From Macrostomum lignano (taxonomy: Eukaryota): DNA of 64,000 bases. The stretch spans positions 107,315 through 171,314 of the forward strand of contig NIVC01002470.1 in the NCBI GenBank assembly GCA_002269645.1. The letters run 5' to 3'. Positions 14,201-17,200 of the stretch are shown here, one piece after another. Position 1 is the first letter of the stretch; every line of letters starts with the position of its first letter. Under the pieces are notes generated by a model, which did not search any database, was not told where the DNA came from, and worked only from the letters and a program-made list of their open reading frames with translations. Made by a program: the position numbers and the translations under genes.

Positions 14201-17200
14201 CCCTCTTATTCACACCCTCTCTTCCCCATAACTTCTTATTCAGACCCTCTCTTTCCCATACCCTCTTATTCACACCCTCTCTTCCCCATAACTTCTTTTT
14301 CACACCCTCTCTTTCCCATACCCTCTAATTCACACCCTCTATGCCATACCCTCTTACTTACACCCTCTTACTCAAACCCTCTCTTTCCCATACTCTCTTT
14401 CTCATACCCTCTCTTTCCCATACTCTCTTCCTCATACCCTCTTTCCCACACCCTCTCTTTCCCATACCCTCTTCCCCACACCCTCTCTTTCCCATACCCT
14501 CTTTCCCATACCCTCTTCCCCGCACCCTCACTTCCCCATCCCCATCTCCATCCATATCCCGTCCCATCGCACAGCCGTGAGCGCACTGAAGCCCTAAGCC
14601 ATACTCACGGTCCAAGTAGTTTTTCAAAGAAAAATCTGACACAAAGAGCAAAAACTACAGGAGTAGCAAAGTGATTATAGGATTAAAAATTCAAATTCTC
14701 ACCAACACATCAAGCACATACCGGAGGGCCAAGTCCTATTGAGCGGCATCTGGGCTGACCAGCCAGACGAGGCCGTCGCTGCCATGCGTGCTGGGCTGCA
14801 AACGATTCAAAACCATGCAGCATCACTTGCAGTGGGGACAGAGAGAAAGTCTAGTTACAGAGCTCGCACCAATGCATGCATTATAGGACTGGTTTATGCA
14901 TACAAACTAAGCCAGTTCGTACAGGTTTCCATGCAGCCAGCACTGACTTGGCTTTGGGTGCAAGCAATTAACTGAGGGCCGGGTATAGCGGAGTCACAAT
15001 CTGAGAAATATGAAGTGTCCAGCTGGTGAAGTGTCCAGTTTGTGATGTGTGTCCAGTTTGTGATGTGTGTCCAGTTTGTGAAGTGTCCAGTTTGTGAAGT
15101 GTCCAGTTTGTGAAGTGCCCAGTTTGTGAAGTTTCCAGTTTGTGAAGGGTCCAGTTTGAAGGGTCCAGTTTGTGAAGGGTCCAGCTGGTGAAGTGTCCAG
15201 CTGGTGAAGTGTCTAGTTGGTGAAGTGTCCAGCTGGTGAAGTGTCCAGTTGGTGAAGTGTCCAGTTTGTGAAGTGTGTCTAGTTTGTGAAGTGTCCAGCT
15301 GGTGAAGTGTCCAGTTTGTGAAGTGTCCAGTTTGTGAAGTGTCCAGTTTGTGATGTGTGTCCAGTTTGTGAAGTGTCCAGTTTGTGAAGTGTCCAGCTGG
15401 TGAAGTGTCCAGTTTGTGAAGTGTCCAGCTGGTGAAGTGTCCAGTTTGTGAAGGGTCCAGTTTGAAGGGTCCAGTTTGTGATGTGTGTCCAGTTTGTGAA
15501 GTGTCCAGTTTGTGAAGGGTCCAGTTTGTGAAGTGTCCAGTTTGTGAAGTGTCCAGCTGGTGAAGGGTCCAGTTTGAAGTGTCCAGCTGGTGAAGTGTCC
15601 AGCTGGTGAAGTGTCCAGCTGGTGAAGTGTCCAGTTTGTGAAGTGTCCAGCTGGTGAAGTGTCCAGTTTGTGAAGGGTCCAGTTTGAAGGGTCCAGTTGG
15701 TGAAGTGTCCAGTTTGTGAAGGGTCCAGTTTGAAGGGTCCAGTTTGAAGGGTCCAGTTTGAAGGGTCCAGTTTGTGAAGTGTCCAGTTTGTGAAGTGTCC
15801 AGTTTGTGATGTGTGTCCAGTTTGTGAAGTGTCCAGTTTGTGAAGTGTCCAGCTGGTGAAGTGTCCAGTTTGTGAAGTGTCCAGCTGGTGAAGTGTCCAG
15901 TTTGTGAAGGGTCCAGTTTGAAGGGTCCAGTTGGTGAAGTGTCCAGTTTGTGAAGGGTCCAGTTTGAAGGGTCCAGTTTGAAGGGTCCAGTTTGAAGGGT
16001 CCAGTTTGTGAAGTGTCCAGTTTGTGAAGTGTCCAGTTTGTGATGTGTGTCCAGTTTGTGAAGTGTCCAGTTTGTGAAGTGTCCAGTTTGTGAAGTGTCC
16101 AGTTTGTGAAGTGTCCAGTTTGTGAAGTGTCCAGTTTGTGATGTGTCCAGTTTGTGATGTGTGTCCAGTTTGTGAAGTGTCCAGTTTGTGAAGGGTCCAG
16201 TTTGTATGGTCCAGTTTGTGAAGTTTATAGCTTATAAATTGCACTTTCGGAATTTCCTGGAAAGGCTCAGAAAAGTTCATTTCTTACTTAGCCTCAATCT
16301 GTATGCCTGGCACGCAGAGAATCAACATTTTAGGATAAAAAAGTGAAGGTCCCACTCAAGCTCATGCTGCATTTACGAGCAATAGACTCAACAACTTATA
16401 TACAAAATAGTTGGAATATTTAAGCAGGATTTAGCCTACTAATAGTAGTCTAAATTGGTTGATTTCACATTAGTAAAAGCATCTACCAGCTCGAAGAAGA
16501 AGTGCACGGTACAGTAGTAGGCGGCCGTCAGCATGGCAGCCAGGTGGGCCAGCACCGCCCGCAACTGCCGCTCAATGTAGAAATCGTCGCTCATCGTGCC
16601 ATTGTTGGTTTTCCAAATTCCTGCATCAAGCAGAGCCAGCTCGGTGTCATTGAAATCGCCCATGTGAGCAGTGTTCTCAATGAAGTCGTGCATGCTATTC
16701 ATTGTGTCCAGCATCTGCACCACCCAGTTCTCCGATGTGAACACCTCGAAAGAGCGGAGCAGCGACTGAAATTCGGTTTCGGGCGGCGTTTAAGGGATAG
16801 CAGAATAGGGTTACCAGGCCCCCAGCTGCTGCTCCCCATCAGGCCTCTGCACTCCCAGCTGCTGTTCCTCATCAGGCCTCTGCACTCCCAGCTGCTGTTC
16901 CTCATCAGGCCTCTGCACTCCCAGCTGCTGTTCCTCATCAGGCCTCTGCACTCCCAGCTGCTGTTCCTCATCAGGCCTTGCACTCCCAGCTGCTGTTCCT
17001 CATCAGGCCTTGCACTCCCAGCTGCTGTTCCTCATCAGACCTCTGCACTCCCAGCTGCTGTTCCTCATCAGACCTCTGCACTCCCAGCTGCAGCTGCTGC
17101 TCCCCATCAGGCCTCTGCACTCCCAGCTGCTGTTCCTCATCAGGCCTCTGCACTCCCAGCTGCTGTTCCTCATCAGGCCTCTGCACTCCCAGCTGCTGTT

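Follow-up and report, generated by a model that had tools for sequence, protein, structure and literature searches.

Exon 15 of NALCN genes is the site of mutually exclusive E and K exons in Schmidtea, molluscs, annelids, echinoderms and hemichordates, with the E exon upstream and the K exon downstream (PMC3557258). The variable part of exon 15 is the stretch between pore helix 2 (P2) and the transmembrane segment S6 of domain II, and the exon junctions are conserved across animals (PMC3557258). The E exon has been lost in schistosomes, and the calcium-like EEEE form of the channel has often been lost in animal lineages (PMC3557258). Here we analysed a stretch of 64,000 nucleotides from the flatworm Macrostomum lignano (contig NIVC01002470.1, positions 107,315 to 171,314; hereafter the window), in which a NALCN gene on the minus strand carries a domain II pore exon of 93 codons. 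We put a probability of roughly 0.68 on the reading that the gene is an intact EEEE-type NALCN of M. lignano, one of two sister paralogues, and that it has no domain II pore exon other than this one. All coordinates below are those of the window.

The exon, the equivalent of exon 15, runs from 16765 to 16487 on the minus strand and is open over its 279 nt (phase 0/0). It follows an AG acceptor (tttcag before TCG at 16765) and ends before a GT donor (CTG before GTAGAT, 16481-16486, minus strand), which is the only non-GT[AG]AG donor among the 13 mapped in the gene. In phase 0 and in frame, it joins the upstream minus-strand exon at 18014-17814, which encodes S4, the S4-S5 linker and S5 of domain II (67% identity to Schistosoma; donor GTGAGT), and the downstream minus-strand exon at 13720-13350, which encodes the rest of domain II S6 (its C-terminal half) and the beginning of the II-III linker (85% identity to Schistosoma over its first 78 residues). 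The translation comprises the pore helix 1 (P1), the filter TSENW, the P2 helix, an insertion of 47 residues and the N-terminal half of S6. The GAG codon of the selectivity-filter glutamate (16730-16732, minus strand) aligns with human E554. The borders fall at the aligned positions of other NALCN proteins, after the FTTFP motif and before IVLSLF in the middle of S6, and the exon itself is unique sequence within the window. The exon is real. The original prediction of an oversized 93-residue domain II pore exon is confirmed by its splice sites, its in-frame joins and the alignments to solved NALCN structures and homologues, and its proposed position at exon 15a/15b is borne out by the matching borders (PMC3557258).

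The gene in which the exon lies is complete over all four domains. tblastn with full-length Schistosoma and other NALCN proteins recovered minus-strand exons of every domain from ~21335 down to ~4560, and the gene spans ~21359 to 4477 with domains I-IV in order; 21359 is the 5' limit of the mapped coding sequence, not a sought 5' end of the gene. Domain I and segments S1-S3 of domain II are encoded at 21359-20884, 20074-19943, 19816-19399 and 18953-18555 (all 100% identical to the M. lignano gene model P0043), the II-III linker at ~12514-11875, and domains III-IV with the C-terminus at 10932-10587, 10210-9779, 8831-8454, 7638-7041, 6169-5764 and 5239-4477, all on the minus strand. Exon junctions were set by hand from the sequence, and those of the II-III linker exons are approximate. 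No stop interrupts the reading frame in any of the four domains, all 13 mapped donors begin with GT, and the exons other than the pore exon are 42-85% identical to Schistosoma by tblastn.

The filter motifs SKEGW (domain I), TSENW (II), SLEGW (III) and TGEDW (IV) make up an EEEE ring like that of calcium channels, and thus one of the three filters (EEEE, EKEE or EEKE within T/S-x-E/K-x-W) by which a NALCN is recognized. Exon order and the helices of an AlphaFold model place four homologous repeats of six transmembrane segments in one polypeptide. The voltage sensor of domain III and the long linkers were omitted from the modelled construct, which was stitched from exons (1168 residues, alignment of 28 sequences); the model reached a mean predicted local distance difference test (pLDDT) of 69.8 and a predicted template modelling score of 0.65. 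In Foldseek it scored a template modelling value of 0.73 with 39-41% identity against NALCN, as compared with ~0.6 and 17-19% against Nav and Cav channels. A stitched domain II query of 241 residues, searched by sequence against solved structures, returned NALCN chains only at E≤1e-3, the best at E ~1e-61. Both by sequence and by fold, the gene is closer to NALCN than to Nav or Cav, in agreement with the identity that had been assigned to it.

Between the P2 helix and S6, the exon holds the 47-codon insertion at 16550-16690 (minus strand), whose edges are accurate to a few residues and which is supported by an alignment gap, a length census and a codon-bias test. A MAFFT alignment with ten other NALCN sequences opened a single gap of 47 columns from the end of the P2 helix to the start of S6. 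The HMMER match to solved human and rat NALCN is likewise split in two (query residues 1-92 to chain residues 479-567, and 134-240 to 563-668), leaving ~42-47 query residues unpaired. The distance from the filter tryptophan to VLSLF is 80 residues in this exon. Among 34 usable homologues it is 33 in 25 and 34 in seven; the remaining two are the K-type protein of M. lignano, with 38, and a monogenean protein with 42, the maximum. A few database entries with 52-75 residues, which appear to be read-through of introns by gene callers, were set aside. Since the P2-S6 length of domain II is nearly fixed in animals (33 or 34 residues in 32 of 34), an addition of 47 residues is an unusual natural variant. 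At the same site, the K-type domain II exons of flatworms are slightly lengthened, by one residue in Schistosoma (P0001 and P0030), five in M. lignano (P0066) and nine in the monogenean (Cichlidogyrus, P0029). Judged from these sequences, flatworms may in general tolerate changes of length at this site better than other animals do.

The insertion is acidic, with nine D/E against three K/R residues (net charge -6), contains no cysteine and bears two sequons, N-D-T at 16643-16651 and N-G-T at 16595-16603, both on the minus strand. By homology with the solved NALCN structures, it would be extracellular, and the additional residues are probably glycosylated. Comparison of the insertion with the window by blastn-short and with the rest of the protein by blastp gave chance matches only, and Pfam gave no match. 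A weak tblastn similarity (E ~0.1) to the translation of a 16-nt intronic array was judged to be due to chance or composition. Neither the loop nor the exon had a match among 5.8 billion protein clusters, an index that probably lacks M. lignano coverage because M. lignano models sharing exact words were not returned. With no match in the clusters and no NALCN representative of comparable length, the insertion appears restricted to this lineage. The first reading of the sequence had called for 47 extra residues between pore helix and S6, an acidic loop with the two sequons and a lineage-specific origin; the gap and the census carry the first of these, the charge and the located sequons the second, and the searches are in line with the third.

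An insertion of this kind invites the explanation that the 47 residues are missing from the mature protein, owing to an internal intron, skipping of the exon or an unrecognised replacement exon. Database proteins of other species do show in-frame extra residues at the same site that resemble intron read-through, and the insert of one of them (P0162) starts with V and ends with Q, as read-through would; the donor of the pore exon is also weak. However, GT dinucleotides are absent between nucleotides 48 and 198 of the exon, so that none lies inside the insertion up to nucleotide 198. We listed all in-frame GT/GC-AG pairs and rejected an internal intron, since none was plausible: in-frame GT-AG pairs begin at the W-V-V codons only, and they remove the conserved P2 helix and use purine-rich acceptors without a pyrimidine tract. 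If the exon were skipped, the pore loop and half of S6 would be lost, and between its two neighbours nothing else resembles a pore sequence.

Codon usage speaks on the same question. Openness of the frame alone is weak evidence of coding because 9.5% of composition-matched shuffles of the insertion stay open. We therefore refer to a codon table derived from 1610 codons of the other exons of the gene, scored against intron trinucleotides, by which the insertion scores 0.447 bits per codon in frame and -0.53 and -0.86 in the other two frames. Real exon windows score 0.73±0.20 and intron windows -0.97±0.56; the score of the insertion was exceeded by none of 2000 shuffles and reached by 0.66% of intron windows. 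The GC content of its third codon positions is 0.68. From codon usage and splice-site content, we concluded that the insertion belongs to the exon and would be coding. With neither an alternative exon nor a usable internal intron, it would be translated in every transcript of the gene. In view of the frame-specific bias and the cost of every available splice, removal of the 47 residues from the protein seems improbable to us.

Gene models of M. lignano bear on the DNA itself. An exhaustive HMMER search returned UniProt A0A1I8F992 (P0028; 98% identity), and A0A1I8FE24 (the above-mentioned P0043) corresponds to the N-terminal half of the NALCN gene of the window. Both are automated predictions on indel-bearing sequence and contain frame-shifted stretches; their undisturbed exons are 100% identical to the window. 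Residues 1-64 of A0A1I8F992 equal window positions 16714-16523 without any difference and include the whole loop. The two models support the DNA of the exon, not its splicing. An exact look-up of the read-through open reading frames of the pore exon and of A0A1I8F992 in a contig collection found no record. The flanking introns are long tandem arrays that are hard to assemble, which could raise the suspicion that the insertion is an assembly or sequencing artefact. Yet the exon itself is unique sequence, and an independent model from another assembly encodes the same 64 residues with the entire loop, so that an artefact is very improbable indeed.

We found no second pore exon in either flanking intron. 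The upstream intron (16766-17813, minus strand) consists almost entirely of a 33-nt tandem array (16821-17811), and the downstream intron (13721-16486, minus strand), where exon 15b would be expected, contains two arrays, one with 76 copies of a 16-nt unit (15011-16224) and one with units of 30/60 nt (13940-14503); neither intron holds a pore-like exon. A scan of both introns in three frames for [STAQ]-x-[EKDRN]-x-W gave one chance hit inside a repeat, and tblastn of both with flatworm K-type and E-type exons at E≤1000 gave no match. The exon is thus the sole pore exon between 17814 and 13720, and a tandem E/K pair is not present. Regular tandem arrays make up much of the NALCN introns at large (13000-18400 and 8370-9680), with units of 14, 16, 30/60 and 33 nt and up to 76 copies; some of these arrays are open in several frames, and the exon at 8831-8454 adjoins such an array.

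A canonical K-type pore does exist in M. lignano, in the protein A0A1I8IWV7 (P0066), which the exhaustive HMMER search also returned. Its pore, with the motif QKGW, exceeds the usual length by only five residues and has 74.5% identity to the exon of Schistosoma. The constitutive exons downstream of this pore do not match those of the window, so that A0A1I8IWV7 comes from a second gene. Among 138 gap-free columns compared outside the pore exon, 13 residues are exclusive to the M. lignano pair; the gene of the window has one such residue in common with Schistosoma, and P0066 has none, which makes the two genes sister paralogues. In agreement with this, both NALCN and FAM155 are reported to be duplicated in M. 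lignano (PMC12412391). The original prediction that the exon has no alternative copy nearby thus holds for the flanking introns and falls short for the organism, which possesses both pore types: the E-type in the gene of the window and the K-type in A0A1I8IWV7. With the K-type pore in a separate sister gene, the choice between 15a and 15b may be split between two genes.

Divergence is much greater in the pore exon than in the rest of the gene. Over its 46 alignable residues, identity to the domain II pore exons of other NALCN genes is 22-37%, as compared with 48-75% among those exons themselves (flatworm K-type against vertebrate, 61%). tblastn with Schistosoma NALCN at E≤1e-3 found the two flanking exons, at 67% and 85% identity, and missed the pore exon. 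The similarity had been described as far lower than in neighbouring exons, and these values agree with that description. What has been kept is a minimal pore signature: T-x-E-x-W with the YH/VH motif of S6, including the invariant F, T and W residues, the S6 histidine and the filter glutamate at the E/K position of other NALCN exons.

Such divergence could mean that the exon is decaying, with its constraint lost after duplication, and that the channel does not conduct, be it a dead pore, a regulatory or scaffold subunit or an early pseudogene. The low identity of the alignable part, the five near-invariant positions altered in the P1 helix and filter flanks, the frequent loss of the calcium-like EEEE form in animals (PMC3557258) and a K-type paralogue that could cover the essential function would all fit decay. 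On the other hand, the frame is open over four domains with GT at all mapped donors, the other exons keep 42-85% identity to Schistosoma, T-x-E-x-W and the S6 motif are retained and the insertion shows a frame-specific codon bias. Given the intact and conserved remainder of the gene, we consider decay less likely than a working EEEE-type gene, and unlikely overall.

Several points nevertheless weigh against reading the exon as the sole pore exon of an intact gene. In the MAFFT alignment, the five near-invariant positions are changed as A7S, M11S, Q13E, Q17S and G19N, and these changes could represent loss of constraint rather than new function. The codon score of the insertion lies within the lowest 8% of real exon windows, and no other donor of the gene is as weak as GTAGAT. 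That the exon is included in mRNA is a prediction from sequence logic. The automated model A0A1I8FE24 splices into the middle of the insertion; the sequence it was made from has indels, and we rejected this splice, with its acceptor inside the insertion, on the ground that it is out of frame in the window. In the AlphaFold model, the pLDDT of the insertion is 54-72, with no homologues to inform it. Finally, the K-type paralogue may have kept an E-type exon of its own.

The predicted structure offers a view of what the insertion might do. In the AlphaFold model, the P2 helix runs to exon residue 34, a short helix occupies residues 40-47 (DTELALLD), a loop with the NGT sequon follows, and S6 starts near residue 58, ahead of its usual start by some 15 residues. 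Both helices, P2 and S6, would thus be prolonged outwards as a helical stalk, capped by the short helix and the loop. The cap, carrying two N-glycans and the acidic cluster, would form a turret on the rim of the outer vestibule, on the side of domain II, which FAM155 leaves free in the human complex. Such a turret could raise the local cation concentration or alter the access of divalent ions; its most likely effect would be a change in access or block by cations, especially divalent ones, in the calcium-like isoform. The original prediction also considered effects on toxin access and cation block, both still conjectural, and on FAM155 docking. Human FAM155A sits over repeat IV and contacts the extracellular loops I, III and IV, not loop II (PMC7672056), and because this interface excludes loop II, we regard an effect on FAM155 docking as doubtful.

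The E-type and K-type pores, which other invertebrates make by mutually exclusive splicing of exons 15a/15b, were probably parcelled out to the two genes once duplication had occurred, and this partition would have freed the E-type exon from constraint and allowed it to diverge. A more far-reaching history we put forward tentatively and would not back at even odds. In the Macrostomum lineage, the 15a/15b pair would have been resolved by gene duplication into two dedicated genes, a calcium-like EEEE gene and a sodium-like EKEE gene, and the EEEE gene would then have built a glycosylated, acidic turret with distinct permeation or block. Each of the two genes may pair with its own FAM155 copy. 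If this history is true, M. lignano would present a natural experiment, with two NALCN pore types in two separate channelosomes.

The remainder of the window contains further features. Directly upstream of the 5' exons of the NALCN gene, the region 22000-26000 has a GC content of 0.31-0.34, compared with ~0.5 elsewhere. On the plus strand, 26263-29023 encodes protease, reverse transcriptase, RNase H and integrase in three frames and represents a Ty3/gypsy-type long terminal repeat element remnant with frame breaks; a possible gag-like piece (DUF7041, weak) lies at 29549-29941 on the other strand. A complete homeodomain of Antp/Hox-class appearance (Pfam PF00046, E=2.4e-21) is encoded at 47765-48190 on the plus strand, ~26 kb from the NALCN gene. 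A long open stretch at 55924-57492 on the plus strand matches the OATP organic-anion transporter family (PF03137, E=1.4e-52). At 1497-2219 on the minus strand, a weak match to the FAN1 HTH domain (E=1.4e-4, below the curated cut-off) may belong to an adjacent gene on the downstream side of NALCN.

Seemingly, the EEEE form has a gene of its own in M. lignano and could be knocked down or expressed alone. M. lignano is a flatworm amenable to transgenesis and RNA interference. If the exon is drifting, it would illustrate how the EEEE form comes to be lost. Whether the loop tunes the pore or the exon is drifting, the finding concerns channel evolution and not a new kind of system.

The closest described counterpart is exon 15a of invertebrates such as Lymnaea and Schmidtea (Senatore et al., 2013; PMC3557258). 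The two share family, exon position and aligned borders, as well as the glutamate in the domain II filter and an EEEE ring overall, and the P2-S6 stretch is already described as the variable part of exon 15 (PMC3557258). The gene of the window differs in having no tandem 15b, with the K-type pore residing in another gene, in a loop that is 47 residues longer, and in P1 helix and filter flanks that are far more diverged. Human and rat NALCN (6XIW, 7CM3, 7CU3 and 7SX3) are the best match by sequence and fold, with the same four-domain plan and with S4-S5 and S6-linker sequences that are conserved in the gene of the window. The human filter is EEKE as opposed to EEEE here, and two acidic residues of the human protein are replaced: D558, the inner one in the P2 helix, aligns with V, and D561 aligns with L. 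Divalent block of human NALCN depends on E554 and, moderately, on D558 (PMC7182417). The extracellular loop of human domain II is the shortest of the four and lies outside the FAM155A interface, whereas the corresponding loop here has gained 47 residues.

In C. elegans, NCA-1 and NCA-2 stem from a lineage-specific duplication of the usually single-copy NALCN (PMC12412391). The likeness to M. lignano lies in this duplication within one lineage. NCA-1 and NCA-2 have the same filter type, and a large insertion in a pore loop is not known from either; the M. lignano pair, unlike them, has E in the filter of one gene and K in that of the other, as well as loops of unequal length. A precedent for a function of the loop may be seen, by analogy, in the invertebrate channel LCav3, where the alternative exons 12a and 12b encode domain II turrets that change the preference between Na+ and Ca2+ with the filter ring unchanged (PMC4436565). 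In both channels, an extracellular loop of domain II is altered in size and make-up. LCav3 belongs to the Cav3 family, however, and its loop lies between S5 and the pore helix (L5) rather than between the pore helix and S6 (L6). The LCav3 loop is also cysteine-rich and alternatively spliced, whereas the insertion described here lacks cysteine and is fixed. Should the loop of the M. lignano channel affect selectivity or divalent block, it would join the Cav3 turrets as evidence that permeation in four-domain channels is tuned by extracellular loops as well as by the filter ring.

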